DNA of 64,000 nucleotides, taken from Haliotis rubra. Its lineage: Eukaryota. The translations under genes were made by a program, and so were the position numbers. The notes below the pieces were generated by a model. That model was not told where the DNA came from. It did no database searches and saw only the letters and a program-made list of their open reading frames with translations. Positions 9,827 through 38,700 of the stretch are shown piece after piece (positions within the stretch are counted from its first letter, which is position 1; the number at the start of each line of letters is the position of its first letter). The DNA lies in contig NW_025767294.1 in assembly GCF_003918875.1 (NCBI RefSeq), positions 434,001 to 498,000 of the forward strand, written 5' to 3'.

Positions 9827-10012
9827 CCAGAACATTGGAAACTCAGGGTAGGAAGTTGTCAACCAATGGATGCCAGAACATTGGAAACTCCGGGTAGGAA
9901 TTTGTCCACCAATGGATGCCAGAACATTGGAAACTCCGGGTAGGACGTTGTCCACCAATGGATGCCAGAACATTGGAATCTCCGGGTAGGAAGTTGTCAA
10001 CCAATGGATGCC
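9827..10012. repeat. 46-bp minisatellite x4
   Basis: CCAGAACATTGG at 9827, 9873, 9919 and 9965. Confidence 0.95.
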
Positions 10013-11294: not shown

Positions 11295-14200
11295 ATGATG
11301 AGAACTCCGATGTGTAGGGGATGGGTTGAAGCATGTGCACGATGGATGAACCTTGGAAATCAGATCCGACATCACTCTGTGTCATACGAAGTGAGTCATT
11401 CAAATAAGCCTCGCTTCTGTATCCCTTTTTTGGTTTTTCAACACACTGCGCCATGAGCTTGAATAACTGCTGTTCAGTGAAATGTTATCAGTACTGAGCG
11501 TGTTCCTGTCTTCAGCTGTTGTTCTTGAGCTGGCTCATATCCATCCATTGTAAGTAGATTGATTACTGAGAGGGTACGTAAGTCCCGAAAACATTCAAAG
11601 TAAATGTAAACTTCCACTTTTTAATCGTAGAATGAATATGTGTTCTTTTAATGTTTGGCTAGATTCATTTAAAGTGCTGATCCATGACAGTTGAAGGGAT
11701 GATGTAAATCCAGCGAGGGTTCATACAGGAAGCAAATGTACCCATGGTCCCTAGTGTGGTGATCCACCTTCAATCTATAACCTGTTTGCATATTGTATTA
11801 TTATCTGTAGTTAATGTTTTAGAATTGATTACTAGTTTTAAATTCATATCTGTGATTAACTAATTGTTTTACTGTCCTTCGTTGACAGCTTTTCTTATAA
11901 TTTACCTTTAATTATTATGAATCTGTAACTTGATATACTCACAATATGGCTGAAATACTGCCGAAGTGTCTTAAGATTTATCTCACTCACTAACACTCAC
12001 GGAGTTGTTGGCGATCTATAGCCCAATTTTATGTTGTGATGTTTTGAAATGATTTAACATTTAACACTGAATTCAAACTAGTTTTAATCGAATTCTGATA
12101 TTCTAATCGTATTACCGTCCTTCGCTAGCAGGATTTTAAATAAGTATACATATGTTTATTCTTAGTACATAACTTTCTGTCGTCACAATATGGCTGAAAT
12201 ATTGCCGATGTTGCGTTAAATATTAACTCACTCACTAACACTCACGGATTACAAAACGTAAGTTAAAAGTCACTTTCTGTATAAAGTTGCAGTTACGCTC
12301 GTGTAGTGCACCACCCCGATGCGAAAGAGGTTGGAGTATTTCACAATGCAAATATATCGTTTCAATGAGGTACATATTTGGCTACATTTGTCAATTTTTT
12401 TAAAAATAGGGACAATAGTGCACCAGCAACAATTTACGGCTGAAGAAAACATAATTACAGTTGTGCAACTAACAGTATGTGAGATATAATTAATGTTTTC
12501 ATTTTTGTTGTCATTCTTACAAGTACGGGTTGCTGAGGAACAATTCTAAATCGGATCTATTTACGGGTTTGGACAGGTTATATGTGCATCTGTGAAGATC
12601 AGGGTTGGAACTGATCTTCAGCAACACATGTTTGTCGAAAGAGGTGACTAACGAGATCGGGTGGTCAGGCTCGCTGACTTGTTTGACACATATCATCGTA
12701 TCGCAATTACGTAGATTGATGCTCATGCTGTTGATCACCGGATTGTCTTGTCCAGACTCGATTATTTACAGACCACCGCCAGTTAGCTGTAATATTGCTG
12801 AGAGCGGCGTAAAAGAACAACCAACCAACGAATCGTATGTGGATTGACTGAAATACTTGGATTGTAAATGAAGGTGACACTGTAACAACCAACCAATGAC
12901 TTGTATGTGAATTGACTGAAATACTGGATTGTAAATGAAGGTGACACTGTAACAACCAACCAACGACTTGTATGTGGATTGACTGAAATACTGGATTGTA
13001 AATGAAGGTGACACTGTAACAACCAACCAATGACTTGTGTGTGGATTGACTGAAATACTGGATTGTAAATGAAGGTGACACTGTAACAACCAACCAATGA
13101 CTTGTATGTGGATTGACTGAAATACTGGATTGTAAATGAAGGTGACACTGTAACAACCAACCAATGACTTGTATGTGGATTGACTGAAATACTGGATTGT
13201 AAATGAAGGTGACACTGTAACAACCAACCAATGACTTGTATGTGGATTGACTGAAATACTGGATTGTAAATGAAGGTGACACTGTAACAACCAACCCACG
13301 ACTTGTATGTGGATTGACTGAAATACTGGATTGTAAATGAAGGTGACACTGTAACAACCAACCAACGACTTGTATGTGGATTGACTGAAATACTGGATTG
13401 TAAATGAAGGTGACACTGTAACAAGCAAAACAACAGACCAGGCGCTGTAGTACTTTGTGAGTTGATAAGTGTACTGAATACGTACCAATACCTGAAACGT
13501 TTAACAGTGTGATTGTATATTTATTGCTACATTGCAGGGTTGTACTTGAAAGAGCAAATTACCAACAGATGTGTTCTGTATAAATGCATTCATTAACAGG
13601 GAATCATTACTTATCACCATGCTATACATCAGATTGCAGAGAACAAACATATAGAAACAATTATAGTATGGAATCACAAATCGCCAACATATGGTGACTA
13701 CTATTACTCTGTGAGTGAGTACATAGTATACTCTTTCGGTTTAGCTTACAAGGTATCGTGCGCCTTCGTTTTGTTACTGACGGGGTGGGGTAGCCTCGTG
13801 GTTAAAACGTTCACTCATCACGTCGAAGACCCAGGGTCGATTCCCCACATGGGCACAATGTGTGAAGCCCATTTCTGGGGTCCCCGCTGTGATATTGCTG
13901 GAATATTGCTAAAGGCGGCGTAAAACCAAACTCACTCACTCGTTTTGTGACTTACTTTTGTCCCGATGCTCATAAATACAGTTATTAGATTTGGACTTTG
14001 TTTTTGGCAGATATAATGATCCATACTGGTCGTAAACAGTGACTGGCCAAACATTTAAGATGTTGCCCTTTTGAATGGCGGATATCGAAGACGAATATCA
14101 TTTGCTATTTATTTCTGATGCATATGTCGATTTCAGAAGGGAGTATATTCCACAGAAATATTTGTGTCACCTACTAGGGACACACTAATCAGATCTCTAT

Positions 14201-17200
14201 CATCTTATCTTCGGAAGACGATTCGGTTCATATACAATTATGTTTTTAACACATTCGTTGACATTAAGGAAGAATCTGACTTCTTCTGGTAACTAATTTC
14301 ACAATGTGATGATGGTTTCCACTATTTGCACTGTCCATACTTTGCCTGTCATTATGATACTATGTATTCGGACCGGAGGCCTTGTGTACAATAAACTATC
14401 TTCATCTAGTAAAAGCTAAATTTGTTCAAGAGTGAGTGACTTAAAATGTATAGTCACATCTACAGTAGTTCAGCCATATCGTTACAAAAACAAGTTACTT
14501 ATGTATGATAAATATAGTTTCAGTATAAAAACCTGTCGACGAAAAACAGTTATAACAATTCTCACATAAACTGAATTCAGAACTGGCGTCTATCTCTGGC
14601 ACAGCAATGCAATATGACAAACTGGCTGCATATCGCCAGCAACTGAAGGTAGGCCACCCTACTAGGGACCATGCGGACTTTTTCAGTATTTGTGCTATCG
14701 GCATGGACCCTACATAATCCCTTCAGTGGTTGACGATTGTAGTCTAATTTAGCCGTCATTTAAAAACCCAAATATATTACGATTCAAATTCTGCAAAACT
14801 TCAATATACTTTAAATGTTTGGGACTTACGTACTCATAAGATGTAATCACGGTGGTTTTATAATCAGTGAATGGTATCAGAAGTGGTGTCAAAGACTTGC
14901 AGAAGAATCGGCCATTGAATTACCAGAAATTCCAACATAGCTGGGTAATCACCACAGGACGATGTCGTGTTGGCCAGGAGCATGATCATTGTATAATTCA
15001 ATTACTTCGATTACACGTGGATGTCTACGTTGCGTTTTGGATGGATTCGTTAACAACTTGTTGTTAATATGGCGGTTGCTTGTGGGCACTGAAATCAATT
15101 AAAGATATAAAGAGAAATTGGTGCTAATGATCAAATCAATCTCTACTAATGCATCGGAATGTATGAGACGTGTTCTGAATGTCTAAACAATTATACTTTA
15201 TTGGTTGGGTGACATTTCAGGAAACCATGAAAACGTGGCATGGTCTGCATACACCAGGCTTCAACTACCTCGCAAACATCCGTCACATGAAGAAGTATAT
15301 GAAGCGGATGGGAAATAGTGTAAGTTTATTTTTTAAACTGGTGTTATTCAGATGCTGCTGGACCGGTTTCTATGTGTCTCCTTATACAAAAGATACGTAA
15401 CGAGGTTCAACTGATATTTTGAATCTCACAAACGTTTACTGGAATGGGGCATCAACGGTAACGGTATCCGCCCTCAAAACCCTCAATTAATGAAAACTGC
15501 ATCATATCTGACATGAATACTATTAGGACGGTGGTGATGGTCCGGTCTTACTTCCAACAGATTTCCGACCTTTCCAAACTGAACGTTCTTCACATCACTG
15601 GCACAAAAGGCAAAGGCTCAACAAGCGCTTTTTGTGAAAATATTCTTCGTCGCCATGGCTACAAAACTGGCGTATACAGGTAGGGTAACTTAGAACATGA
15701 CAAATATGTGTTTCACAAGAAATGTTGAATGGCTATTATAATTTTCACCGCTGCATCGTCCGTGGTTGGCCATTACATATGACGAAATGGGTAGCTCATC
15801 TTTGCTTTGTGACCAATATATTTGATTGACAGCCTCGTTAACCGAAGAACTGATCTAGCCCCGTCGTCAAAACGTTAACCTACTCCCATCCTTGCTTTGA
15901 TTTGAAAATTCAATAGACCCAATTTGATCATTTCATTAATAATTATAACAGCCTCCCTTTCTGCTAAGTTACAAAGGCATATCAAATTTATTTTGAAGCT
16001 TCTTGATACTGACTTACTTTAAACATCAACTTACAAGTTAATGTATCTGTACTGTGACCTTTTCACCTGAAAGGGGTTTCACACATTCTGCCCATGTGGG
16101 TAATCGAACCCAGATCTTCAGCGTGACGAACACGACTCGGCTATTCCAACGCACCCCAAATACCGAAGAGGTTTCCTTACGGAGTGCTACGTATTTACCT
16201 AAAACACTTTTGCAAGTACTTCCGGCACGGAACCTATGCAGCCCACGCACTCTTGTCGAAAGAGGCTACTCCTTCAATTGCAACCCAGCAATTCAGGCAT
16301 GAATCTACTTAAATAGTGTCAAGACAGGTCTTTATTCAAATAAACTTGAACGATACCTCTATATTAGGATGGATTATCGCACCAAGCGAACGGGAAGAGT
16401 GGAATTTGTTCTACTCATGGTTGCATCACAAACATGGAGTTTTGTCGACATAAACATAGCAGTAGACAACAACGGATCGACGTCCACATTTGACAAACGT
16501 AATTCGGACAATAGTGTCGCTATCGGCTCCCGTCACAATATGAACAGCGTCTAAAGTGGTTGGGACATTATAAGTTGTTCACTGGTTACATGGGTTGATG
16601 TACCTTCTAAGTTTGTTTATGTCCCCTGAGCCTGTGAGGTAAGAAAGGTGTAGCTGTCATGGAACACCAGTTTTATCTTCTGTCATCCATAGTTCACCTC
16701 ACCTGATCAGCATCAATGAGAGGTTCCTGTGTGACGGCAAGCCTATCGAGACGAACCTGTTCAAGGACCACTTCTGGGACATCTACAACAAACTCTTCAG
16801 ATTAAGGGTACTGATACACACAAACCGAGAACGTTTGTTATCAGCAACACGATTTGTTTACACGTGGGCAACAACATGTCAGCAAATGTGTCGTACTCGC
16901 TGATCTGGGTTTATATTAGGCACAAGAGTCAGGAATTGGCCGAATCAAAGGAAGCTAATTTGGCAAAGTTTAACTTAAGTTTCGGGATTATGATCCGACA
17001 TCGTTAAATAATAGTCAACGCAGTAGGACAAAGCAGATGACTTTCCCTAAATGTCGAAACATATCATATCCTCCTACCTATGGTATCTAAATTTTAAAAC
17101 CTCATATTACTTGTTCATATGATATTTGATAAAACATTTTATCAATTTGCCAAATTTGGACAACTGATTCGCTCTTGGATGTATGTGATGGATGCCACCA

Positions 17201-20200
17201 TCGGGGAAAGTGGCGCAAATATATGCTTATTATGAATAGGGACACATACATTCTTATGATTATGGAATTGATGATTTTATTTTGAACTACAGTCATGGTT
17301 TACAGGTCTCTTTATATACGCCTGTTGATTAGTACTTTTCAAGGAATGATACCATATCCATTGTAGACACATCACGTTGGTCTGGAAATAATCAAACACA
17401 TACATCCGGAGAAAAACTTACTAAATATCATGAACATCAATTCATTCTTTACAGGAATCAGAAGACGATATGCCACATGCATTTGCCTTTCTGACTCTGC
17501 TGGCTTTCGACCTCTTCCTTGCGCAAGGAGTTGATGCTCTGATTCTTGAAGTCGGAATAGGAGGTCAATACGACTGCACCAACATTGTTGAAAGACCAGC
17601 TGTATGCGGAATTACTTCGCTGCATGTGGACCATGTCCAATACCTGGGTAACACTTTAGAATCCGTGGCCTGGCACAAGGGAGGTGTGTTTAAAGTAAGT
17701 TTCTGAATGGAATAGATTAATAGGATCCGCGGGAACTGAAAGAGCATATATTTGAATAATCAATGACCATTGTGAAATATACTTGAATGAATATCACAAA
17801 TCTGAATGACTTTGGTTTCACAACATCATTGCAACCAGTCAATTTTCATTTTTGTCGAGAGGCGGTGGGGCAGCCTAGTGGCTAGAGCGTTCGCTTGTCA
17901 CGCTGAATGCCCTTGTTCTGTTCCAACGTGAGGCCAATTTCTGGTCATGATATATTGCTTAAAGGGCGTAAAACCAAATTATTTACTCACTCAGTTTTTT
18001 CGACTCACAACCATCGATTACAGTGTCAGGATTTTCAAAAAATTGTATCTTGAGCATAGTTAAAATAAATAAACTTTGTTCAAACCATTAAAGTGGTTGG
18101 TGTAAATGATTGTCAAGGCTATGGTTCAGTATATTTCAGCCAGGAGCACCAGCAGTGACAGTTCCTCAAGACCCATGTGTGATGAAAGTCCTAGAAGACA
18201 GAGCTGAAGAAATAGGGGTACTGCATGCTAAGTGTTACATATCCCGAGTGCATGGAGAGTGAAAAGTATGGCTTTCTCTATTTGCGAGGGATGGTGGGGT
18301 AGTCTAGTGGTGAAAGTGTTCGCTCGTCCCGCCAAAGACCCTGGTTCGATTCCCCACATGGCTACCATGTGTGAAGCCCATTTCTGGTGTCCCCGCCGTA
18401 ATATTGCCTTTGGATGTATGTGCTAAAAGCATGGCATCACACTTGCTTATCAACATCTCTGTAAATTCGGACAAGACCAACGGTTAACGTTGTAACGAAA
18501 TAATCGACAAGACACACGTTTAACGTTGTAAAGGAAATAATCGTTAAACTCCACATCACCCCAGATAAGCCTTGTGTTCAGTGCGTTACGGAATATAATC
18601 ATTGCCAGCTCAGACCTTTGTCATACATGTCTTATTTTCTGATTTAGAAACATTTCCATTCAGTGTTTACTGAACTGTATCAATAAGCACCAATAACCAT
18701 CACGTCCCCATTTCCTCACCTGAACTTGAAATTAAGGAGACAAGTGAGACCGCTTCAACTGTTTCAAATGTTATTTAGATCTACGCATAAAGATTGAGAG
18801 GGACAAAAAAAACCAACAACGTTGTATGACAAAAGAGACGATTTCAACTTCCCAAGGGTGTACTTTCCTTTCATGTCAAGCAATATTCCAACAGCTACAG
18901 CCTTTGGTCAAACACAATATTGATGAATTCAGAATTGTAATTCGAGATTTCGCATGGATGTAGATGGGGTTTTGTCACTTCTATATGCATTATATCACCT
19001 GTTTTGTTTCATTAACTAGACTACATTATATGAAGCCCCGCCGCTGGCTACATACGACGGTGGACCTGAGCCAATCAGGTTAGGGATCCCTGGTCACGTG
19101 CAGCAGGTCAATGCCTCCCTAGCACTACAGATGTGTAACATATGGCTGGAGTCTCAAAGAAACGGTAATAGGATGCACAAGAATGTACTGGAACGTTCTC
19201 AGTAGAGCTGCTATAAAGAAATCGACCATGTAATACTCGGATGTTGTTATGATTAGGAATTGTGTTACCACTTAAAGACAAACATAATTTAATTTCATGA
19301 AGAGATGATAAATATTGATTTGGAGCCAAACAATGTTATTGAAAATCTGTTCCACTTTCTCAATTACTTCCTAAAACAATATTTAAGTAAGGTAATATGT
19401 TTGCATATGAAGAAATAACTGGTGTATAAAAATGTTAACTCGCTGCTATATGTGTTGTATACACAGACTATCTTTTCACAATGATACAAAACAACCGCAA
19501 TGGCATAATTTTGCATTATTGTGAAACACTATTTAGATGTTGGTAGATATTGTCATAAGCTAAATCAATTTATTAATTGTAGCATATTTGTTTTAATATT
19601 CATGGATGTGGGATTAATATTGGTATATGATTCACTTGACAGGGTTTCGCATGACAACAGTGGATGAAACATCGACTTTCAAAAACGAAAGCACAAAGGC
19701 ACAGGGGTTCACCTTGACTGACGCCATGAAAAATGATAAGAATATTTATTGATTTTGTTTTGGTTCATTCATGAATGTTATCAACTGGGTATACTTACAT
19801 GCACAGAAGATACTTACAAACAAGAAAACTATTACTTCCATATTGTATGCATTGACATACATGAGAGCTTAAAGCATTCAATCGTCAAAGCGAAGACCAG
19901 GTTTCGATTTTCCATATGAGTACAATGTGTGAAACCAATATGTAGTGTCCCTGTCGTAATATTGCTGGAATGTAGCTACGAAACATACATGAATACAAAA
20001 TCATCTTGCGGTAGATTCCTGTGAATAATAGACAGTGTAAATAATGTTAACAACATTGACATCACAGACCGCTCATGTAATCACTACTTAGATCAACTGT
20101 GTACAACAATTCGACAACTGTGATAACTTTCAACGCAATAATGCAAACCTATCCTATTATCAGCCAATACAGAAACATTTCTCTGCCAGTAGTATGATTA

Positions 20201-23200
20201 TTTTCGATTTGTGAAAATATATTCTCAAACGGTTATCTATTCACATATTTACACAGGTACTGTTTATGGGAGGCATTCATTCATTTTAGTTTTACATCAA
20301 ATCGTTTTAATGAATTGGCCATTTGTTTTCTTTTCTAAGTTTGGCCCAAACAAATCTCCCCGGAAGGGCCCATGTTATCTCCCGTCCCGGAGTGACCTAC
20401 TACCTGGACACGGCTCACACTGACCTCAGCATCGAGGTATTGATGTAGCCTATGTCATTTATTTATTCATTAAATCAGAGAGAATTCGGAATAAGATTTG
20501 TGGTTAACTGAAGAGTGGATGTAATGCAACAAAACCTTCGAAACTTATTATCGTGCCCCAGACGAGTTAGCTCGTAGATCATAACGTCCATTAGGGGGTG
20601 GGGTGTTTGTGTATGCACCATTGAAACTCTCGTTAGAACGGGTGAAAATGAAGTGTGCACCCCCCTTTTCTCCCCCTCCTAACTAGATCTACACGGGTTG
20701 TACCAATTACTTACATTATTTCCATTCCATAATGACAGCATTTGGCCGAGTGGTTCAACCAAAAGGCTGACGAAGAACTGTCAACACTGAAGTAAGTTAC
20801 CTGTACTGCACCTGTTTGTTGTGTTTGGCGTCTTTTCGCAGAAAGTGACACAGTCTGACGATTACCAACTCATTAAAGATCCTCATCATCGATAATCGCC
20901 CGTTTATGTATACCACAGGCTTCACTATCCCCTTGTGTACTTTGCAGGCTTCATTTGTTAACGTTTCTATCAAAGCCCTTGTGTTGTTATTGTGTCTGGC
21001 TTCCTAATCCCTATTGTACTGTACAAACATCTGCTCTACTTGTATATATGCTCATCCACCCTTATGTTGTTCATCACGTGCTTAATAACTGTTAAATGCT
21101 ACACCGAAACGTCGCTCTCACAGCGATAAAGAATATATTGTTATCCTTCCTTACTGCCCCAACTTCCAAATGCCTCTCAAAAAAGTTAGTCTGTCGAGTA
21201 TTTTCACTTTGTGTAATTCCATAATCATGCGGATGTAAATAACCCTATGGCACATAGATAATTAATGGAATATAAAAACAAAGTTATTAGTCATCCTCCG
21301 CTCAAATTGGTTTTTGTGGGAGAGCTCCTCCTGTCTGTCTACCTCTTTTAAAAAAAGTAACTCACAACTCATTCAATACTTTTCATGTACACACATCAGG
21401 TCAGCATTTTTCCTTCTTTGCTTTTTTGTGTTCCGCTAATATATTTTTAATATTTATCGTATAATGTATTATCAGATGCGTAACATATTTCTATTTGTGA
21501 TTTTTAAAAAGTATCTGAAAAGGCAGTGGATATCTGTCTTATTTCTATTTTATTTTTTATCACATTATTCCTTTTTAATCTAGGATGATTTAATTTTCCT
21601 TATTATTTATTGTTGAAAGTGTATTTGTGTTCATGGTAGATCGAACTATGAAGTAACAATTTACAGAATGCAAAACCCGTTAATGATTCCAGAGGACGTG
21701 TTGCTCGAGTCCTGATTTTCTATGGATCTGAAAAAAGGGATATATGCAAACATATATCGATATTACAGGTGAGTGAGTGAGTTAGGACTCACATCGGCAG
21801 TATCCTAACAGTATCGTGACTAGAACAAGTTATACATTCCTGACACACCCACTCAGAGTAGTATAAACACCTGTGGACAACAGACAGTCCAAACAACTTG
21901 AATGTGACTGATATAAACTAGCATGTAATTTTGAAACTATAGACAGTATGATAAATGCCCGGCTATAGATCGCGAACAACCGAAGGTAGTTGTTGGTCCC
22001 TGCCTGGCGCTCGGCATTAATGGGTACAACAAGGACTGGTCGGCTCGGAGTCAGTATAATGTGTCTGAGTGGGGTATTCATGCTTCACCGCGGCATAATA
22101 TCTCAGTGGGCTAGCACTTTTCAACCTGCTTACGTCTGGGCTAGTACAAGCAGCCGCACATACACATACACCCGCATGCACGTCGTCATATGAGCGAAAT
22201 ATTCTCAAGCACGACGTTAAACCCAATTTCACCTCACCTCACCTGAAGGTAGATCACCATACGGAAGACAAATAGGTACCTTTGCTTCCTGTATGTAACG
22301 TAGCTGGATTTACAACATCACTTCAGCTGTTGGCGATTGTGCTATTTTCAAAACAATTTTATCCAATCTTTTGTGATAATTCAATTTCATTTCAAAGGCA
22401 ATAAATAAATGACAAAGATGTCTATATACAGCCATCGGCAGACAGGAAATAGTCAGTCTTTACGGCCTATGCCAATCCCAATTTCTTAGCAGTGTTACAA
22501 CTATCCTCCATACTCACTGATGTATTTTCTTGTTTTTCCAGCAGAGACTCAAACTGGATGCTGTTATCTTTACAGCCTACGCCAGCCCCACTGAAGACTG
22601 TTCTATAGGTATCATTCATCTTGAAAACACAATTTCGCAAAGACTTTGTATATTTACATCGCACACAAATTCCGCCTGCCTGTTTGTGGCGGCTGATTTC
22701 GATGGCTTCCAAAAGTTTTCTTTTTGTGATATCCTGATTCCCCATCCCTATCCCTCAGAACCATCCTCCATAAAGTCGTATGCTTCATTATTGACTCGGC
22801 CACTTCTAGCACCTCACCAAGCCCTAAATCAATTACGTCTATGTCGGATCCAGATCACCAGATCCGGCTTAGAATTGGTATTCAGCAGCCTATGCTTGTC
22901 GTAAGAGGCGACAAACGGAATCGGGTGGTCACATGTCATCGTATCCCAATTTGGAATATCGATGCTCATGCTGTTGATAACTGGATTGTCTGGTCCAGAC
23001 TAGATTATTTACAGACCACCGTCATATAGCTGGAATATTTCTGAGTGCGGAGTAAAACTAAACTCACTCACTCGAGATCACCAAATATTTTTAAACATGT
23101 TGACAAAATATCTTTCATCTGAGGTAAACATACGCCAGTAAAAATATACATCTCAACAGTACATTCATGTGTAAATAAGAGAACTGGCATAAATATTGTA

Positions 23201-24334
23201 TATGTTGCCGTTTTAATGTAAGTTTAATCAATTTCATGTTATTCCTAAAAGTAAGCTTTGAAGTGATCAAAAATAATTTGAGAATAAGTTTCGCGTCACT
23301 GACAATAGTCGACAATGATTCCCCTCTAGTGTTACAAATAAAGCCACAAATAGATGTCCATTCAGGGCCTGCAGATTTCATTCAGGGCCTGTAGATTTCA
23401 TTCAGGGCCTGTAGATTTCATTCAGGGCCTGTAGATTTTAAAGCCTGCAGGCCATGATGGCCACCTCCCAAATTTTAGTATTGCAAAACACTGAGTGAAA
23501 CTTGAGTCGGCAAATAGTCGACAATGATTGCCCTCTAGTGTTACAAGTAAAGCCACAAATAGATGTCCACTTTCAAACATCATTTTATTCAACTAATTGT
23601 GATGATCCTGATTTTCTTCAACAACACCGGAGTGACTTATTGGGCCACTAACAACGTTGTCTAGTGGGGCTAGCTTACTCAGTCGATGCATGTCAGCGAA
23701 TATTAATTTCGTAGCACGAAGACCTCGTGCTGTCAACCATTGGAGCGTATGCCCCATTCATGATTATTTACAGATTGGCGTCATATTGCTTAACTAATGC
23801 CGAGTATAGAGTTGAAATCAACAGATCAGTCATTGTCTTAAAATGGATAAAGTAGGAGTTCATATTAACTTGGTGCCATTGTATTGTGTCATTTCAGATT
23901 ACATCTATGATAACATCTCCAAAGAGGAACAGTTCCAGAGCGTTCTTACCCTCAAGAAATTCTGGGAAGACAATACTTCCACAACAGACAACATGACAAC
24001 CGAAGGTAAACATGCTGGCCATTCATGTGCGTCGTTTACAGCGAGAAGTTTCCCAGAGGCTCTCATAGCCGCGACAGGTGGGCGTGACCTCAACATACGT
24101 GGCATAGAGGATTATATCTCTCAGCAACAATCTGGCAAACATCGTATGACGTCTTCGGGCGATCATTACAGAGATGAGAGTGTTACGTGGGCATCAACAA
24201 AAGATGGAGTGTGTCTTGATTATCCAAAATTACCAGAACAGGTTAATGACGCCGATCACGTTCAGATTCTGTTTGCTGGAGGTTTCAAGATAATTGGTCA
24301 TGGTCTGTGGTATCTTCAAGGGGAACTATTCTGA
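11295..24334 (+). CDS. FPGS: Folylpolyglutamate synthase-like protein, paralog 1 (13 coding exons, ~571 aa, probable mitochondrial presequence)
   Basis: Exons 11295-11390, 15221-15319, 15561-15679, 16693-16807, 17455-17694, 18140-18217, 19020-19164, 19643-19735, 20339-20436, 20739-20791, 21693-21768, 22542-22608 and 23898-24334 join in phase with no stop. Motifs: [11 protein letters not shown] (P-loop), [33 protein letters not shown]. All introns are GT-AG except intron 8 (AT-AA, see findings). Confidence 0.92.
11686..12240 (+). mobile_element. Two tandem family D retroposon 3' fragments
   Basis: Each ends in CACAATATGGCTGAAATA.TGCCGA...(CACT)n AACACTCACGGA. Confidence 0.7.
12590..12825 (+). 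mobile_element. Family B retroposon heading a composite unit
   Basis: Complete head, body and tail. Confidence 0.88.
12818..13425. repeat. 67-bp minisatellite x~9
   Basis: ACAACCAACCAATGACTTGTATGTGGATTGACTGAAATACTGGATTGTAAATGAAGGTGACACTGTA; same unit at 36357. Confidence 0.97.
13781..13942 (+). mobile_element. Family A tRNA-derived SINE
   Basis: A and B boxes, body and (CACT)n tail. Confidence 0.9.
14430..14830 (-). mobile_element. Family D retroposon fragment
   Basis: Similar to 11686-12000 in the opposite orientation. Confidence 0.55.
18690..18910 (+). mobile_element. Penelope-like retroelement RT relic in FPGS1 intron 6
   Basis: Degenerate [20 protein letters not shown] and [24 protein letters not shown], characteristic of a Penelope-like RT C-terminal region. 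Confidence 0.7.
21769..22340 (-). mobile_element. Family D retroposon fragment interrupted by a family C SINE
   Basis: Tail at 21769-21825; body resumes after 22244. Confidence 0.7.
21990..22243 (+). mobile_element. 5'-truncated family C (Meta-like) SINE
   Basis: Near-identical to 10371-10628; TSD GAAGGTAG on both sides. Confidence 0.9.
22860..23072 (+). mobile_element. Family B retroposon
   Basis: Head, body and (CACT)n tail. Confidence 0.85.
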
Positions 24335-26761: not shown

Positions 26762-29700
26762 TCAGAATAGATCCCCTTGAAGATACCACAGACCATGACC
26801 AATTATCTTGAAACCTCCAGCAAGCAGAATCTGAACGTGATCGGCGTTCTTGACATGTTCTGGTAATTTTGGATAATCAAGACATACTCCATCTTTTGTT
26901 GATGCCCACGTAACACTTCCATCTCTGTAATGATCGCCCGAAGACGTCATACGATGTTTGCCAGATTGTTGCTGAGAGATATAATCCTCTATGCCACGTA
27001 TGTTGAGGTCACGCCCACCTGTCGCGGCTATGAGAGCCTCTGGGAAACTTCTCGCTGTAAACGACGCACATGAATGGCCAGCATGTTTACCTTCGGTTGT
27101 CATGTTGTCTGTTGTGGAAGTGTTGGAGTCTTCCCAGAATTTCTTGAGAGAGAGAACGCTCTGGAACTGTTCTTCCTTGGAGATATTATCATAGATGTAA
27201 TCTGAAAAGACATAATTCAATTACGCCAGATCAATACACACTTACGCGTTTCCTTTTCCAGTTGAAGAAAGCGATCAATCGACTGACTGATTTTAAATGC
27301 CGCACTCCAATATCGACAACGATATTGCAGTGGTTTTGCGGAGGCCTGTAGATAATTAATCCCGTATGCATAGATCTGCAGAATTAAGAAACCCCGACAT
27401 GTACCAACCTAGATAGAGAGAATAACTGCCCAGTGCTACCCATGCAGATACTGGCCTTTGGCAAGAATGGGTTGCTGAAGACTTCTACCTGGATCTACAT
27501 GGGCCGTTGCTTAAAGTGATATCAGATGGTTGACATTCAATTGAGAGATTAGTGAAACACAGAAACCAATCAGTATCAAACATTTATCGAAACAGATTCC
27601 ACAGGCATATAGCTGAAATATTGCTGAGTGCGATATTCAACAGATTCCACAGGCATATAGCTGGAATATTGCTGAGTGCGATGTTAAACAGATTCCACAG
27701 GCATATAGCTGGAATATTGCTGAGTGCGATATTCAACAGATTCCACAGGCATATAGCTGGAATATTGCTGAGTGCGATGTTAAACAGATTCCACTGGCAT
27801 ATAGCTGGAATATTGCTGAGTGCGATATTCAACAGATTCCACAGGCATATAGCTGGAATAGTGCTGAGTGGGATGTTAAACAGATTCCACAGGCATATAG
27901 CTGGAATATTGCTGAGTGCGATGTTAAACAGATTCCACTGGCATATAGCTGGAATATTGCTGAGTGCGATGTTAAACAGATTCCACAGGCATATAGCTGG
28001 AATATTGCTGAGTGCGATGTTAAACAGATTCCACAGGCATATAGCTGGAATATTGCTGAGTGCGATGTTAAACAGATTCCACAGGCATATAGCTGGAATA
28101 GTGCTGAGTGGGATGTTCAACAAACAAATAAACTGTCGCCATCTCCTTTCTTTATCACATCATTACTACCAATATCAGAAGGATTAAAGGAATCAATGTT
28201 GTTCCGTTGTTTGTATCAATACCTGTTCTCGTGAACCAATTATCTACTTTGCTTGTTTATGGGGTATGGAATACCTAGTTTGATGTCACATGCTTATGTC
28301 ATGAATGAATGTTGTTGTTGTTTTGTAAAGATGCCAATACCTGGTAATTCCAATAAACTTGTTACAGTTATTCTGAGCTAAGGATTTCGTAAAATGACTG
28401 GTCAAATTAGTAATCTGTTCATGAACTATTTAGTTACGGGAGGTGGGGTAGTCTAGTGGTTAAAGCGTTGGCTCGTCACGCCGCAGACCCGGGTTCGAAT
28501 CCCTACATGTGTACAATTAGTGAAGCCCATTTCTGCTGTCCCCCGCCGTGATATTGCTAGAATATTGCTAAAAGCGGCGTAAAACCAAACTCAGTCAGTC
28601 AGTCAGTTTAGTTCATGCATACTTATAGTGATTTTACTAACTGACTGAAAGTTTTTGTCACGAAAGTTTCGCGAAACATCATGCTCTGAGTTTTATATGC
28701 CGCTATTGATAAACTCAACAACTGCAAATTGTCTGCGAATGTTACCTTACCTATAGAGCAGTCTTCAGTGGGGCTGGCGAACGGCGTAAAGATAACAGCA
28801 TCCAGTGAGAGTCTATCCTAAAAGAACATCAGTGGGTATGTTAGTTTTGTATTTACTGTGAACATTCTGTCATGTAAATTACGAAGTGTTAGTTTATCAT
28901 GGCACAGATCAAACATGTTGAAACCCAAGAGTACTGTCATGGTCAAGGATCCTAATCACTGTGATTTGGGGATTCAATTCCAGTCGAACAGTCCTTAAGG
29001 ACACATCAGGCGTTCTTTCTTCATATTAACTGATTTTGATTCAATGATTTTATATTTTATCACTGTGGGAACATTGTGTGATATAGGTTCCATGCTATCT
29101 GTCACCCGTTGCCATAATTGGATTGTGGTTGATAGCATATAATCGGTTCCAAATGCATGGATTAATGATCACTAGAATGTCTGGTCTGAGTAAGTGATGA
29201 AAGAACGCCATGTCCAGAATCTCATGTTCATACCATTGGCAGCACCTGTGGGGAGTCGGGCTTTGATATAGGTCACCTGCAACCTGTGACCTGTGATCGA
29301 AACTGAGGACATGCATGCGTGGATGATTTTCACGGGATTGTTTGGACCAGATTCGATGCCTTAGAGATCAATGCCATGTATATTATAGGTAACACGATCT
29401 ACATAATGTGCTGTACATGTTATGTAATAACAACACACTTTGGTTATTCGTTTGATTGATGTTCCTTCATCAGAAATTCTTTGACAAATCCTCTACCTGG
29501 TACCCGAAGACTCAACGACACATTCTTGTTGATACTTTTACAATTTCATCATTCGACATGGCCATCCTTTGCGACGTTTGGGTGTAGACACTAACATCTG
29601 GGTTAAAGCTGGACTTCAGTAACTGACATCTTGTGTAGGGAGGAGAGGGGAGGGTGATGGCACGGCGAACTAGTCGACCAACTTAGTAGTAAGTCCAGGC

Positions 29701-32700
29701 TTTTGGACGTTCTTCCATAACATGTCACAAGGTATCTGTAGTGTTGACATCTTGTGTAGGGAGGAGAGGGGAGGGTGATGGCACGGCGAACTAGTCGACC
29801 AACTTAGTAGTAAGTCCAGGCTTTTGGACGTTCTTCCATAACATGTCACAAGGCTATCTTTAGTGCTGACATATTGTGAAATATGTTCACCGGTGGTCAT
29901 GAGATTGCTCTAATTGGTCCTGATTGGAGTGCTGGGTAAAGGTTTGTCACAGCCAAAGCAGGGGTAACATATTCACCCTGCACAATCACTGACCCGTAAC
30001 TGCTAACGCCCCAGTTGGGTAAGTGGGAATGTGCCGGTGTAAATCACTGGATTTTCCAGTCAGACTCGATTATTTACAGACGGAAGTCACATAACTTCTG
30101 TGAGAAGTTGGGGCAGTAAGGAAGGATAACAATATATGGATGAACAACTTCTTTTTTGCTGTGAGAGCGACGTTTCGGTGTAGGTTCTAACACTGTTATC
30201 AAGCAAGTGATGTCATATCGCTGAAACATTGCTGAAACATTGCTGAAACATTGCTGAAACATTGCTGAGTGAGGTGATAATCAACAAACAACAAACATGA
30301 GGTCACGTGGCCAGGTACCCGTGAAGATCTGGTTTAGAATATTGATCTTCAGTAACCCATGCTTGTCGTAATAGGCGACTAACGGGATCGGGTGGTCAGC
30401 CTCGCTGACCTGGTTGACACATGTCATCGGTTCCCAATTGCGCATATCGATGCTCATGCCGTTGATCACTGGATTGTGTGGTCCAGACTCGATTATTTAC
30501 AGACCGTCGCCATATAGCTGGAATATTGCTGAGTGTGGTGCAAAACTAAACTCAACTCACTCACGTCGCCAGGACGACGATTATTCCAGTTGAGCGAATA
30601 AAAACACAGACAGTTGCTTCAAGAGACCTGTAAGGCAGGTTTGTAGGTAGCATGTTGACGCTTTCTTCGTCGTTGTGTTGACAAACAATGTCGAAATATT
30701 AAAAGTTGTACAAAATGAATACACTCGCGTCATTGTTATGTATAATAAGGTAAACCAGGTGGGACGTTGCTGGGTGCGGCGTTGAACAACAAACCAACCA
30801 ACCAACAAACAAACAAACAAACAAACAAACAAACAAATCTTTCAGAAACTGGTCAGTGGCCATATTGAAGATGCACATGTAACACCTCAAACACAGACGC
30901 AACGATAATGCTGAGTTGATGTCTGTCCAATAAAGTATTGCCCTCAGGAGTTACAGCTGTTTACATAATTATGCAATATGTGTAGTTGAATCTGTGGCAC
31001 ACAATTGCATACTTGATGTAGATGGCTCCTGGCTCACTGTGACACTGCTACAAGGAGATTGTGTAACGAGGACGTTCTACACATATCGAAGTCAGGTCAG
31101 GATGAACACACACGGTATGTCATCCAAATATATGTTGACAATTTCTAAGTGATAATGGACCATTCAAAGTCACCCATTTGGTCCCTAAGGGTGGGGTTGC
31201 AGAATGGTTAAAGCATTCGTTGATACAGTAAAGTCAGTGACGACACACTGATTACTAAACTTGTTTCAGCTCAGCTTGCGTTACCGGTAGATTCTGGTCC
31301 TGTTGTAGCTGTCCACCCATCTCACCCCTCTTAGCCTATCGGAGATAATGTCAGCGCTTATGTCAGAACGGCCATGTTGTGCTGCCTCGAAAGGTGAAAA
31401 CGTCCATGGATGTTTTTCTCCAACGTGACATTATATCCCTTATTTTCTCCAAAGCAGAATATAATCTTGAACGTGATCGTCGTTGTAACGTACACCATTC
31501 AAAACACCATTAAGATTAATGAGTTTTGTTCACCCATAACTTACGATTCTACACCATGCCATCCAAATGTCATCCCGACGTGAAATAACCGTCCAGAACC
31601 GCCCAGTCTTAAATGCCAGCGTTCATATCCGCCAGTATGCATGCTTACCTTCAATATCGACAAATGTTTGCATTGATCCCTTCCGTCAGCTCCGTAGAAC
31701 ATCATGACTCGAGCAACACGTCCTCTGTAATGTGAAAGGGGGCGGTGGGTAAGCCTAGTGGTTAAAGCGTTCGCTCGTCACACCGAAGAGCCGGGTTCGA
31801 TTGACCAAATGGGTACAATCTGTGAAGCCAATCTCTGGTGTCCCAGGCTGTGATATTGCTTGAATATTGCTAAAAGCGCCGTAAAACAATGCTCACTCAC
31901 TCACACAGTCACTATAATTGGAAACGGGTTGGTATTCTCTGATATGTGACTGAAGTATTTAAGCATATTTCGACTCGCATAATGACATGAATACACGGGC
32001 AATGTAGTTTTCAAAAACAAATAATCTTACTTCCACTTTGTTTCGGTAAACCGGATTTAAACACCAGTTGGAACCAGACATATACATCTTCTGCCCTTTG
32101 AGATGTATTCACTGAATCACAAATACAAAATGTACCATGGCTTTCATTACACCAGTTATATATATACACTCATTATAAACAGAGGTGAACAACTATTCTT
32201 TAATAGCGACAAAACACACTACAGTCAAGCACCGTTGTGTCGAACTCTGATAACTCGATATCTCGGCTGTCTCGATATAACATCTCGGTCCCGGCAAAAT
32301 CCTTCACAATTTATCATTATTCAAGATCTTTTAACTTGACACGGATGGCTCGATATTTCGGATATCTCGATATAATTTCATGGTCCCAACAAGCAAAATT
32401 ACCCTTTTAAGTCGATATTTGCAAAGAAACGCGATATTCAGCTCCCTTTCATGGGCAAGTATCCCTCTGAACTGAGGTTGTTTCCATACGTTTACACACG
32501 GGGCGGCATGAATCAACGGGGTGCGGTAGTGTAAACTAATTAGTGCTAATTGAGTTGAAGGTGTCACTTGTTTGTTATTCAGTTAGGATTAATTAAGAAG
32601 GATTTAATTAGGAAGTCCTCACTGTTACGACTAAGCAGTTCTGATAACGGATAATAGTTTCGAATCAAAACATATTGAGCAGCGTTTTGTTTTCTTTCAT

Positions 32701-35700
32701 AGTGACATGTGATGATATGCCCTGGTTGGATATCTCGAAGTTCGGATAACTCGATATTTTTTCCCTAGTCCCATGAATATCGAAACACTGGTGCCCGACT
32801 GTATTTGAATATATATTTGATGTCTGTGTACAAATTTCATAAAATGAATGTTCAATGGTTTGTGAATCTGGCTAAAAGATACGTGGCTAGCTGACGGAGA
32901 CTGTTTCTTTGTCTAACTTCGTTTCAACGTGGGATGAACTTCTACCACACTGTACACTCATATTCGGTGGCATTGTCGTACACGTGACTTACTTCAGATT
33001 TGACCGTTCTTCATCAGCTTTTTGGTTGAACCACTCCGCAAGGTGCTGCCATAAATGAATAGAAAGACTGAGTGAGTTCAGTTATACGCCGCACTCAGCA
33101 ATATTCCAGCTACGTGGCATCGGTCTGTAAATAATCGATTCTGGACAAGACAATCCAGTGATCAACAACATGAACATCGATCTACGCCATTGGGATACGT
33201 TGACATGTGTCAACCAAGTCAGCGAGCCTGACCACCCGATCCCGTTACTCGTCTCTTAAGACAAGCATGGGTTACTGAAGATCACTTCTAACCCGGATCC
33301 TCACGGGTAGAATAGAAATAACGTAGGTAATAGGTGCAGTTGACAGAAATTGTCAAGCAGGTGAGACAATGTCGTTTCAATCTCGATTGTGTGTTCTCGT
33401 ACATGTATAGGTTTAAGGCTAATCATGTCCTACCAACACACTTTCGCAAAGGACCCGTGAAGATCCGGGTTAGACAATTAGCAATTCAGCAATTAGTGCT
33501 TGTCACAAGAGGCGACTAACAGGATGGCGTCGTCAGGCTTGCTGACTTGGTTGCTGCATGTCCCCCAACTGTGCAGCCCGATGCTCATGCTGTCAATCAC
33601 TGGAGTGTATGGACTAGATTTGATTACTTCCAGAGCGCCGTCAGATAACTGGAGAATTGCTGAGTGTCGCGTTAGTCACTAAACAAACACACCTTCGCAA
33701 AGTTATTATTCTTTCCAAATCTCAAAACTCTGAAGATTTATTTGGTAGCAATTATACTGAAATCACCAACAACCTTCAACCATAACCAGATTGCAGCGAA
33801 GTGCCCTACTTGCCATGTCAGTTAATAGACAATGAATATGTACTATACATTAGGAACAGAATAATTATCTTAATATTTATTCATGAGGACGCAAATCGTG
33901 ATGCAAAGTCAGGAAATGCTCGGATGTAAATGAGGATTGCTGGGCTACAGTTTCAGGCCAAGGAATGTGTCATCCTATTTGAATATGATTGCCTGGGTTC
34001 GCTTTCTCGACGTCGACAAGAACACATCACAGTGACATTGATTCAGTGTCGCAGACCAACTGAAGGCAGCACTTATTCATGTGTTCAAACGCCGAAGACC
34101 CTGGTTCGATTTCCTACATGGGTACAATGTGTGAAACCCACTTCTGATATCCAGCTAAAACCAGAGGTTTTCACTGATTCTCATAAGACGTGGGGTAGCC
34201 TTATGGTAAAACCTTTCGACGGTTTTATTCCGTACATGGGTACAATGTATGAATCCCATTTCGTGTGCCCCCCGCCGTGATATAGCTAAAATAGCACTTA
34301 ACGGGCCGTAAAACACTACTCACTCACTTACACCCGTTAGCTGTTGCTTAACGCCGCACACAGTTGAATGCACCAATCAGTCTACGGTTCATGAGTACTC
34401 AACAAGACCAATGATTTACATTATGGGCAACGACTGTATGGATACGAAAATAAGAAATCAACCACGAAACCGAGCCTAACAGCGTGGTGGGCGAACTGTT
34501 TAAGGCGCCAGGCTAGTGATCCAGCGAGCTTGAGGTGTCGGGATCGAGCCCACTTGTGGCTGGGTGTAAAAATCTTGGAGTCAGCTTTGTGTGCACACTC
34601 TTTCAGTGTTGTCACAAACCCTAGCGTACAGTACACAACCCTGTGCACTTAAAAGAAGCCACGAATCCGTTGGTATATGATCAGATGGTGGACACATGAA
34701 TACGTGCAAACACCTAGTTGCGGGTACAGCAACGTGCAGTAAACTTGGACAAAGTACTGTGACTATGTGTCCCAGTCCATCCAGCTGCGAATGGGTACCT
34801 AACATGGCCTTGATTGTTAGCGCTATGAGCATACCTAGTGTGGAGTTTGGCGCTATATAAAATGGACACATTATTATTATTATTACCTCATAAGGATGGG
34901 AAAGCCACAATAACTCGGTGCACCTAGTGGTTGCAAGAGTTGTATGATCCCCAGGGAGTTGGTTTAAAAATATTTTATTGTCCAAAAGACAACGGGATTA
35001 GGCACAAGTGCACCACTTGATAATACGATGTGCCGTTGAGATTGGCATCCAATGGTCGAGGGAAAAATACCAGCGCCTTGAGCATCTACTAGTTGAGTGG
35101 ATATGTGCGCTATATAAATATCCTATAATCCTATAATAATAAACACCTGATCCCAAACATCTCTCAGAACCACCTTCTCAGTCTCGAACCAAACCTTAGT
35201 TTGTGGCAATAACATTGGTTTTCTGTCCAGTTAACCACAATGAATATTCAATATTCTCTCTAATTTCATGATCGAATAAATGACAGAAGCTGCATCAATA
35301 CCTGGATGCTGAGGTCAGTGTGGGCCGTGTCCAGGTAGTAGGTCACCCCGGGACGGGAGATCACATGGGCTCTTCCGGGGAGATTTGTTTGGGCCAAACT
35401 TAGAAAAGAAACCAACGGTACAATGCAAATAAACAAGTTGACTTTACACTAACTTGCCTGAACGTACCGAACGCTATAGGTATAATGCGTATAACTACTT
35501 ATATTTATGTATAATTTATGTACTCTAATATTGCAGTTGCATTAATGGTGTTTGGTTGGCTGATCAAGCAATATTTCCTTGTGTTTACGTTTTCACAAAC
35601 TGAAGTAGATATTGTGCAATGTCCACTGGCGGACGAAGTGTTTCTTGTGAGGTCAATGGGCGCTTCATTCTGTGACTGAAGTCGAATTGTTGTCGTACGG

Positions 35701-38700
35701 TGTTAATGTTTCGATAAGCAGTCTGTGAAATTAAATTTGTTGATATTGTTATAACAAAAACCATTTCTATATCTTATTTTAGCGTTAGTCTATTAAGAAC
35801 AAAATCTTGAAGCCAATGCTTAAACCATTATAGTTTTGTTTAGTCTGTAAGTATGATGTAAGCTTGTGGATGTCCAATTGATATCATTCTTGGATGACAA
35901 AATATTTATACTTATCATTCATCATGCTGTCAGTCAGTTTGAATCCTTGGGCCTTCTGTGACCATTCGCGTCCTTTCTTCATGGCCGAGGAGATGGCCTC
36001 ATCACCAGATGGCTGTTCCACCCCTGTTATATGAAGTATATACCAATATTGAAGCATACAATAACACTTATTGTTGGGCTATGAGATTATGAAAATATTA
36101 TATCTATACATGTCTAAAACGTGTTGCAGACCGGCGAAGATCCGGGTTAGAACTGATCTTCAGTAACCCATGCTTGTCGTAAAAGGCGACTAACGGATCG
36201 GGTGGTCAGGCACGCTGACTTGGTTGACACATGCTGTCGTATCCTAATTGCGCAGATCGATGCTCATGCTGTTGACCATTTGATTGTCTGGCCCCAACTC
36301 GATTATTTACAGACCGCCGCCATATAGCTGGAATATTGCAGAACGGGGCGTTAAACAACAACCAACCAATGACTTGTATGTGGATTGACTGAAATACTGG
36401 ATTGTAAATGAAGGTGACACTGTAACAATCAACCAATGACTTGTGTGTGGATTGACTGAAATACTGGATTGTAAATGAAGGTGACACTGTAACAAGCAAC
36501 CAACGACTTGTATGTGGATTGACTGAAATACTGGATTGTAAATGAAGGTGACACTGTAACAACCAACCAATGACTTGTATGTGGATTGACTGAAATACTG
36601 GATTGTAAATGAAGGTGACACTGTAACAACCAACCAATGACTTGTATGTGGATTGACTGAAATACTGGATTGTAAATGAAGGTGACACTGTAACAACCAA
36701 CCAATGACTTGTATGTGGATTGACTGAAATACTGGATTGTAAATGAAGGTGACACTGTAACAACCAACCAATGACTTGTATGTGGATTGACTGAAATACT
36801 GGATTGTAAATGAAGGTGACACTGTAACAACCAACCAATGACTTGTGTGTGGATTGACTGAAATACTGGATTGTAAATGAAGGTGTCACTGTAACAAGCA
36901 ACCAACGACTTGTATGTGGATTGACTGAAATACTGGATTGTAAATGAAGGTGACACTGTAACAACCAACCAATGACTTGTATGTGGATTGACTGAAATAC
37001 TGGATTGTAAATGAAGGTGACACTGTAACAACCAACCAATGACTTGTATGTGGATTGACTGAAATACTGGATTGTAAATGACGCTGACATTGTGGCAATC
37101 TAAACAACAGACCAGGCGCTGTAGTATTTTCTGAGTTGATAAGTGTACTCAATACGTACCAATACCTGAAACGTTTTACAGTGTGATAGTATATTTATTG
37201 CTACATGGCAGTGTTGTAATTGAAACAGCAAATTACCAACAGATGTGTTCTGTATAAATGCATTCATTAACAGGGAATCATTACACACGCACTAAACCGT
37301 GTTGCACATTGATTTACCCATTCTGAACTGGTGTTCATGTAATAACAAGAATATATGACAACACGGATGTAAACGTGAGATATGCATTCATTAACAGGGA
37401 ATCATTACACACGCACTAAACCGTGTTGCACATTGATTTAACCATTCTGAACTGGAGTTCGTGTAATAACAAGAATATCTGACAACACGTATGTAAACAT
37501 GAGATATCATGACCTTCTCTTGTGGAGTAGTTATAGTTATAACTCAGCATATTATTGAACTGTACGCCATTTACATTGACAGACAAAATCCACCTGCTTT
37601 TACCACAACAGAGTCTTTAATTAACCATTCGTTTTCTGACTGACTGACTGAGTTTGGCTTTACGCCGCTTTTAGCAATATTCCAGCAACATCACGGCGGG
37701 GGACACCAGAAATGGGCTTCACACATTGTACCCATGTGGGGATTCGAACCAGGGTCTTCGGCGTGACGAGCCAACGCCTTAACCACTAAACTACCCCACC
37801 GCCCACCATTCGTTATCACTGACACAACTTATTGAACTATGTTACACCGTATTACCTTGTCCCAGAGCTTCCAGCCATATGTTACACATCTGTAGTGCTA
37901 GGGAGGCATTGACCTGCTGCACGTGACCAGGAATCCCTAACCTGATTGGGTCAGGTCCACCGTCGTATGTAGCCAGTGGCGGGGCTACATATAGCTTAGT
38001 CTACAAAACAGTTGATATAATGCAAATGCATTTCAGGAAAGACTGACAGTGTTTGTAAACCCGAGAGAGAAAGGTGACGAGTTGTTTAGTGGGTTAGTGA
38101 GTAAGTATTGTTTACGCCGCTTTTAGCAATATTCCAGCAATATCACGGCTGGGGACACCAGAAATGGGTTTAGCACATTGCACCCATGTGGGGAATCGAA
38201 CTAGCGTCTCAGCGTGACGAGCGAACGTTTTAACCACTAGGCTACCTAACCGCCCTGACAAGTTCTTGAAGGGGCAGCGACTTTATACATTAACGTAATG
38301 ATAAAAAAAAATCTGAAGATAAGCACGTTTCGTGTTCACTATATGTGTTCCGTTCAGCTGAATGGAAATACGAAGGTGAGATAAGATGAGATTATAAACG
38401 TATAAACGTTTAAGAGTATTGCTCTTATAGAGCAGCTGTGTGATTGGCTGTTTGATCCAGTCTGAGTGAGTGAGTTTAGTTTTACGCCGCTTTCAGCAAT
38501 ATTCCAGCAACATTACGGCTGGGATACCAGAGAGGGCTTCACATATTGCACCCATGTGGGGAATCGAACCACAAGACTATCCCCAAATCACTCGCCAATA
38601 TGCAAAACACATGCATTACCCCTATTTCTTCAGCTCTGTTTTCTAGAACTTTCATCACACGTGGGTGTTGAGGAGCTGTCACTGCTGGAGTTCCTGGCTG

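Follow-up and report, generated by a model that had tools for sequence, protein, structure and literature searches.

Introns which begin with A and nevertheless belong to the major (U2-type) splicing system are represented by the class II AT-AC introns of human SCN4A and SCN5A and of TAF2 in human and fly, where A at position +1 stands within an otherwise strong consensus 5′ site, /ATAAGT (PMC5029451; PMC1557818). These U2-type AT-AC introns possess a pyrimidine tract, lack the signals of the minor (U12-type) spliceosome, are conserved in orthologues, have been spread by duplication within gene families and end in a base other than G which matches the A at +1; a U12 AT-AC origin has been proposed for them (PMC2831892). 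It is known that the first and the last base of an intron make up a non-Watson-Crick pair required for exon ligation, and that in yeast and human a change of G to A at +1, which blocks ligation to AG, can be rescued if the last base is altered as well (Parker and Siliciano 1993; Chanfreau et al. 1994; Scadden and Smith 1995, as cited in PMC1557818 and PMC11585973). The terminal dinucleotides AT-AA are found in U12-type introns such as those of human RASGRP4 and MSH3, which are conserved between species, and constitute the commonest non-canonical type of the minor spliceosome (PMC1557818; PMC10639083). The window analysed here, a stretch of 64,000 nucleotides of Haliotis rubra DNA (contig NW_025767294.1, positions 434,001 to 498,000 of the forward strand), holds two folylpolyglutamate synthase (FPGS)-like genes, called here paralogs 1 and 2, each of which is interrupted by an intron with AT-AA ends. 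Comparison of sequences suggests that it is probably a selected U2-type, that is major-spliceosome, AU-AA intron derived from a GU-AG intron.

The features of paralog 1 around this intron are as follows, in window coordinates:

19643..19735, plus strand: exon 8 of paralog 1, 93 nt, placed after a canonical AG at 19641-19642 and ending in AATG, where G19735 is codon position 1.
19736..20338, plus strand: AT-AA intron, 603 nt, phase 1, with the 5′ end ATAAGAATA and, at the 3′ end, a pyrimidine tract followed by CTAA.
20339..20436, plus strand: the 98-nt exon 9 of paralog 1; a canonical GT comes next, at 20437.
19750..19752, plus strand: TGA stop reached by read-through; retention of the intron gives …KNDKNIY*.
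19707..19708, plus strand: weak GT (GG|GTTCAC) of paralog 1 only, which together with AG 20338-20339 makes an in-frame canonical junction, …KAQ-G-LAQ….
20338..20339, plus strand: AG overlapping the 3′ end of the intron by one base; the AT donor joined to this AG shifts the frame by -1.

Exon 8 terminates with ATG AAA AAT G, its last base being 19735, and its homologue in Haliotis asinina was mapped exactly. The intron starts at 19736 with ATAAGAATATT (ATAAGA), its 3′ side reads TTTGTTTTCTTTTCTAA down to A20338 (TTCTAA), and exon 9 opens at 20339 with GTTTGGCCCAAAC, of which the beginning is GTTTGGCC. The last exon base (G) differs from the last intron base (A), and the first intron base (A) from the first base of exon 9 (G), so that the junction cannot be slid to a canonical pair without a change in the mRNA. 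Translation past exon 8 yields D K N I Y and then TGA as the sixth codon. Paralog 2, on the minus strand, is arranged in the same way:

35916..36023, minus strand: exon 8 of paralog 2, which has 108 nt, has diverged from its counterpart in paralog 1 and ends in AATG.
35400..35915, minus strand: AT-AA intron of paralog 2, 516 nt, ATAAGTATA ... TTCTTTTCTAA.
35302..35399, minus strand: exon 9 of paralog 2.

The observation of AT-AA ends is confirmed at the level of sequence. The original prediction, made from the letters of the window, had described the exon 8 and exon 9 sequence around 19736-20338, the read-through stop at the sixth codon, the AG at 20338-20339 and, as other possible donors, GA at 19740 and a weak GG|GTTCAC near 19707, and all of these are present and can be read directly. 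It had further stated that paralog 2 carries the same two A substitutions, which is correct (intron 35915..35400, ATAAGT...TTCTAA), that both sites are otherwise good U2 consensus, which agrees with the TAAGT-like positions +2 to +6 and the pyrimidine tract, and that the U12 signature is absent, neither the U12 5′ site ATATCCTT nor the branch site TCCTTAAC being found. Finally, it had claimed that the joined product is collinear with the FPGS motif (G-L before PGR); glycine does occupy the position of the split codon in 108 of 121 homologues, with alanine in 9 and aspartate in none.

Both As had been proposed for checking in genomic reads. Logan DNA contigs of runs X1, X4, X5 and X7, which carry three organism labels, were aligned to 19550-20550. 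Position 19736 is spanned by contigs of all four runs and position 20338 by those of X1, X5 and X7, with A at both places and no listed G; no difference is listed at 19735-19741 or 20337-20340 in a table which leaves aside 55 less supported differences. Two more distant organisms differ from the window at many neighbouring sites, for example 19731, 19747, 20313 and 20376. An error of sequencing or assembly was therefore rejected, as the DNA contigs agree and seven other assembled copies have the same ends. Runs X7-X9 were considered as RNA (their word share of 0.10 equals the exon share), and this was discarded, the contigs of X7 covering the intron as DNA does.

The family to which both paralogs belong was recognised with the 78-residue exon 17470-17703 as query, which led to P0002 (XP_071096435.1, "folylpolyglutamate synthase, mitochondrial-like", Haliotis cracherodii; 570 residues, 89% identity). 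Its 90% cluster also includes P0151, the second H. cracherodii copy, and P0153 of Haliotis rufescens, while the H. asinina member is P0154; the window matches none of these exactly and is closest to H. asinina (85% protein identity, dS 0.28). In total eight copies from four genomes were compared, two in the window, one of H. asinina, two of H. cracherodii (one named Hcra1 below) and three of H. rufescens (Hruf1 to Hruf3). AT-AA ends occur in 8/8 copies of this Haliotis-only FPGS-like clade, among them two further H. rufescens copies at L007 45997-46219 and L008 20892-23823. The invariant pattern is AATG | ATAAG-N-ATA ... Y-tract YAA | G: the 5′ hexamer is ATAAGA in six copies, ATAAGT in paralog 2 and ATAAGC in Hruf3 (L008), and all eight introns finish with AA, as CTAA or TCAA. 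The introns themselves range from 223 to 2932 nt, and their bodies are only 51-65% alike between distant copies in forced alignments. The As shared by eight of eight introns with diverged bodies are more than chance. In Hruf3 the split codon is G|GA rather than G|GT, a change which is synonymous only under the AT-AA reading. Four NCBI proteins were also mapped to their own loci by enumerating all donor/acceptor pairs that reproduce the protein. For P0002, P0151, P0153 and P0154 there is a single solution for the exon 8/9 junction, AT-AA in phase 1, and all other mappable junctions of these proteins have a GT-AG solution.

Set against the described U2-type AT-AC introns, the abalone intron has A at +1 within a /ATAAGT-like site (positions +2 to +6 match TAAGT at 4-5 of 5), a pyrimidine tract (64-77% pyrimidines at -25 to -4), no U12 signals, conservation between orthologues, a spread by duplication of the gene family, and a last base which is not G and matches the A at +1; the sequence TACTGAC is present about 24 nt upstream of the 3′ end in three copies. 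It differs in that the last base is A and not C, and its need of the U1, U2, U4 and U6 small nuclear RNAs (snRNAs), as in that class, is a prediction. The intron works like the U2-type AT-AC class but stands outside its strict membership, since all eight copies end in AA where AC is required. With U12-type AT-AA introns it shares terminal dinucleotides and conservation between species; unlike them it has no /ATATCCTT start and no TCCTTAAC branch site, has a pyrimidine tract, and its homologous introns are U2-type. By analogy it looks like a natural, fixed double substitution of the kind known from suppressor mutants, although in the literature searched the documented rescue is of A with C; Chanfreau et al. 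(1994) reportedly saw yeast 3′ sites ending in A or C become active when +1 was A.

The history of the position is also different from that proposed for U2-type AT-AC introns, where a U12 AT-AC ancestor was proposed (PMC2831892). In H. rufescens the canonical FPGS, P0158, is interrupted at the same codon and in the same phase by a GT-AG intron (L005 19135-19930, AATG|GTTAGT...TATCAG|GTTTG), and so is a homologue of Gigantopelta aegis (L006 12658-13409, AAAG|GTAAGT ... TTACAG|GACTGG). Maximum-likelihood analysis places the eight AT-AA genes in a clade with full support, confined to Haliotis, on a stem of 1.32 changes per site, and the canonical abalone FPGS falls with other molluscs. Since GT-AG occurs at the same codon and phase in both relatives, AT-AA is the derived state. 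It arose from GT-AG through a G-to-A change at either end, on the stem leading to this fast-evolving duplicate, and has outlasted the subsequent duplications as well as the separation of the asinina-like from the rufescens/cracherodii lineages (dS about 0.4-0.6).

That the intron has to be removed in frame is indicated by the exons behind it. For exons 9-11 and 13, dN/dS lies at 0.17-0.46 when distant copies are compared; the upper limits from bootstrapping are 0.49-0.72, and a value of 1 was not reached in any of 300 resamples. Taken by itself, exon 9 has 0-0.18 in deep pairs. In the six copies that were extracted codon by codon the exons contain no stop codon. Purifying selection together with stop-free exons means that the downstream frame is translated, and on the same grounds a pseudogene was rejected. 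Canonical solutions were searched for as in-frame, stop-free GT-AG or GC-AG pairs with the donor at -75 to +60 nt and the acceptor at -60 to +40 nt. In this range the H. asinina copy, Hcra1, Hruf1 and Hruf2 have zero such pairs, and no canonical pair is common to the copies. Only in paralog 2 does a GT lie four bases inside the intron; with the AG it gives a fully canonical GT-AG. With no canonical pair in four copies and none shared, a non-canonical junction is required for the family as a whole, and a hidden canonical junction was rejected.

For the non-canonical junction three in-frame candidates lie on conserved bases: AT-AA, which encodes Gly; TA-AG, which gives GAT (Asp); and a donor at +4, GA/GT/GC-AG, which gives Asp-Asn or Asp-Lys. 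The latter two would end at AG 20338-20339, which is in frame with a donor at 19737 (TA) or at 19740 (GA); as for the +4 donor, paralog 1 has GA, as have four other copies, while paralog 2 has GT and Hruf3 has GC; paralog 1 offers also the GT at 19707. The respective mRNAs would read AAAAATGA-TTTGG, AATGATAA-TTTGG or, in paralog 1, CACAGG-TTTGG. A junction of this sort is rather unlikely, but some facts speak for it and so against AT-AA: all these joins keep the frame, TA-AG and the +4 donor use bases invariant in all copies, the AG is canonical and follows a good pyrimidine tract, the +4 donor of paralog 2 results in a regular GT-AG intron, and conserved GA-AG introns of FGFR1-3 and ITPR1, with their conserved non-canonical 5′ dinucleotide joined to AG, furnish a model for the +4 donor (PMC4176328). 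Unlike in those genes, however, the abalone +4 site pairs poorly with U1 and its product would lose the conserved Gly. When the registers were scanned against the 5′ end of U1, the AT register made 7-8 of 11 pairs in unbroken stretches of 4-7 (7 pairs in the GT paralog); the +1 register made 4/11, and the +4 register 6-7 in stretches of 2-3. A TA start is without both G+1 and U+2, and the second base of the would-be +4 donor varies (A, T or C) across copies, as an unconstrained position +6 of an intron would. Asp at the split codon is seen in 0/121 homologues, Gly is encoded by the four NCBI models, and the GT at 19707 is missing from the other seven copies, which read GGATTC there. By these indirect arguments, namely the Gly codon, the ancestral intron, the U1 register, the variable +4 donor and the NCBI models, AT-AA appears to be favoured over the other non-canonical junctions. 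It may also be supposed that the intron is mostly or always retained, that the main product is a truncated protein of about 330-360 residues, that AT-AA is an artefact of homology modelling and that the downstream exons are separately expressed or decaying. This is unlikely as well; it is kept mainly because of the read-through models P0155 and P0156 of NCBI and the split annotation of the third H. rufescens copy, to which may be added that the spliced junction has no RNA support among the runs listed. Opposed to it are the stop-free exons 9-13 with purifying selection in the six copies extracted codon by codon, the lack of an own start codon in exon 9, which continues the match to the folC profile, and splice-site blocks that stay invariant within diverged introns.

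Two further explanations accept the AT-AA ends and assign them to another machinery. In one, adenosine-to-inosine (A-to-I) editing of both terminal As would turn AU...AA into IU...AI, to be read as GU...AG, and the full-length enzyme would need the activity of adenosine deaminases acting on RNA (ADARs). Edited splice sites do exist in human transcripts, GT-AA in ADARB1, NRK and HOOK3 and AT-AG in C14orf37, with A where the spliceosome needs G (PMC4176328), and an edited mRNA would be identical to the AT-AA mRNA, so that comparative evidence cannot separate the two. The human cases described always concern one end only and are alternative events, for which surrounding double-stranded RNA is to be expected (PMC4176328), whereas the abalone intron is a constitutive coding intron with A at both ends and no duplex; a case with both ends edited was not met in the literature searched. 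Exon 8, intron and exon 9 with 100-nt flanks were folded for six copies. Helices at both As do not exceed 8 bp, and in the majority of these copies the -1 A stays unpaired. Perfect complements within 3 kb extend over 7-10 nt at the longest, a length expected by chance, and are not conserved; a long near-perfect duplex was not found. In addition, ADARs disfavour G as the 5′ neighbour, and the +1 A is preceded by G, the least favoured one. Editing would also have to act efficiently at both sites in eight copies with unrelated intron bodies, and as an account of the junction it is very improbable. The editing-gated expression switch which the original prediction had put forward, and which would here confine the full-length FPGS-like enzyme of abalones to places where ADAR acts on two sites, is hardly to be expected and finds no support in the folding or in the base preceding the +1 A. 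In H. asinina only, the 5′ site TGATAAGAA (L002 9371-9379) is perfectly complementary over 9 nt to the pyrimidine tract TTCTTATCA (9969-9977) directly ahead of the 3′ end; this complement could bring the ends of the intron together and is too short for an ADAR substrate, and in other copies at most about 5 bases of the 5′ site and tract are complementary. In the other explanation the intron is a U12-type AT-AA intron of the minor spliceosome. The ends are those of the commonest non-canonical minor type and molluscs are relatively rich in minor introns (PMC10639083), but the 5′ site matches the U12 consensus ATATCCTTT at 4-5 of 9 positions, and neither TCCTTAAC at about 10-15 nt before the 3′ end nor any TTCCTTRAC-like branch site at a usable distance was found. 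The sequences that come closest to a branch site (6-7 of 9) belong to the tract itself, 11-13 nt before the end, and lack a branch A at the proper place; the pyrimidine tract (64-77%) is unlike U12-type introns, and at the homologous position the canonical paralog and Gigantopelta have ordinary U2-type GT-AG introns. The U12 type was rejected on the grounds of the 5′ site, the branch site and the tract, and is extremely improbable.

A U2-type AU-AA intron would be explained in the following way. Its ancestor was an ordinary GU-AG intron splitting the conserved Gly codon that precedes the folylpolyglutamate synthase motif L-x4-[WL]PGR, and both terminal Gs became A on the long stem branch of the abalone-specific FPGS-like family. 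U1 would recognise the 5′ site through G-1 and U+2 A+3 A+4 G+5, as in the /ATAAGT-type sites of U2-type AT-AC introns, and the A at +1 would permit the first splicing step. The pair A+1/A-1 would then take the place of G+1/G-1 in the non-Watson-Crick contact needed for exon ligation, as A/C does in AT-AC introns, and the frame-shifting AG one base downstream would presumably be unused because the first-last contact would be of A with A. The mRNA would join AAAAATG to GTTTGGCC, restoring GGT (Gly). Splicing is probably inefficient, as models with a retained intron exist in H. rufescens. The original prediction had proposed, as one of its two options, an A...A intron of the major spliceosome kept by selection. 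The conservation, the GT-AG ancestry, the purifying selection, the U1 register and the four NCBI models speak for this option, while the exact RNA junction, the type of spliceosome and the A-A contact are what we infer from them.

Several observations weigh against a U2-type AU-AA intron. No RNA for the intron region or for the last exon was found among the sequencing runs listed, the four runs aligned being DNA. No transcript-derived protein of the clade was found in the protein collection with the whole P0002, the junction region or a 111-residue piece, in searches whose length windows left out fragments of 195-312 residues; only proteins of NCBI genome annotation were recovered. The NCBI models could come from protein-homology alignments that tolerate non-consensus splices and not from RNA reads. 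In H. rufescens, P0155 (isoform X2, second copy) and P0156 (third copy) read through to the stop in the intron, and the annotation of the third copy (L008 6001-26941, JALGQA010000008.1) ends at the read-through stop, the later exons forming a separate gene. That split was probably caused by the non-canonical intron of 2932 nt, and the read-through models fit either inefficient splicing or missing intron support in the annotation. In the literature searched, the documented rescue of A at +1 is by C as the last base, natural AT-AA introns appear only as U12-type (PMC1557818; PMC10639083), and the U2 system is considered to tolerate fewer combinations of first and last base than the U12 system (PMC2831892).

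If the intron is indeed spliced in this manner, it would be a natural major-spliceosome AU-AA intron under selection, with a known GU-AG ancestor and eight independent descendants. It would mean that the first-last contact which positions the 3′ splice site can work with A and A in place of G and G, and that an overlapping AG is ignored when +1 is A; the evidence for this contact has so far been derived from engineered mutants and from A with C in AT-AC introns. The locus would also serve as an example of a compensated double substitution fixed in a fresh gene duplicate, and it would provide a set of natural variants ready for minigene and structural work. There is a practical aspect too, as gene finders limited to GT-AG, GC-AG and AT-AC would truncate or split these genes, and one H. 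rufescens copy has already been split.

The two host genes lie tail to tail in the window:

11295..24334, plus strand: FPGS-like paralog 1, 13 coding exons, located by tblastn of P0002 and P0154, with no stop in any aligned exon.
26765..45313, minus strand: FPGS-like paralog 2, 13 exons.
19890..19990, no strand assigned: very high-copy interspersed repeat (~100 nt) within the AT-AA intron of paralog 1, outside the splice signals.

The folC profile TIGR01499 scores 295 bits for P0002 and 284 bits for P0154 (cut-off 162.65) over residues 53-455, which span the junction, and the P-loop GTKGKGS is represented by GTKGKGST. The clade has LPGR in place of WPGR and DTAHT in place of DGAHT. Beyond the profile a conserved C-terminal part of about 115 residues (about 456-570) is present in P0002, P0154 and both window paralogs. 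With these motif changes, the extra C-terminus and the long stem of the tree, the function of the FPGS-like enzyme may have changed, possibly towards a new activity.

The paralogs form an inverted duplication whose last exons are 95% identical (23878-24341 vs 27221-26755). Exon 8 is strongly diverged between them (93 nt vs 108 nt) despite the similar last exons, a contrast that may point to gene conversion at the 3′ ends. In paralog 2 the beginning of exon 5 is duplicated at 39878-39919 on the minus strand, just upstream of the real exon at 39804-39550; the duplicate covers 13-14 residues, 86-92% identical to P0002 and P0154. The repeat at 19890-19990 is covered by contigs with a depth from 10^3 to 10^5 in each of the four DNA runs and has many relatives across the window, for example at 13784-13941 and 18293-18430; it is a very abundant SINE-like (short interspersed nuclear element) sequence in the abalone genomes examined. 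A 67-bp satellite with 97% matches is present as 9 copies at 12816-13428, in intron 1 of paralog 1, and as 11 copies at 36357-37093, in intron 7 of paralog 2; the long open reading frames listed at these arrays are repeat artefacts. A 48-bp array is placed between the paralogs at 27590-28122, and two runs of N (151 and 228 bases), two bases apart, are found within 2278-2658.

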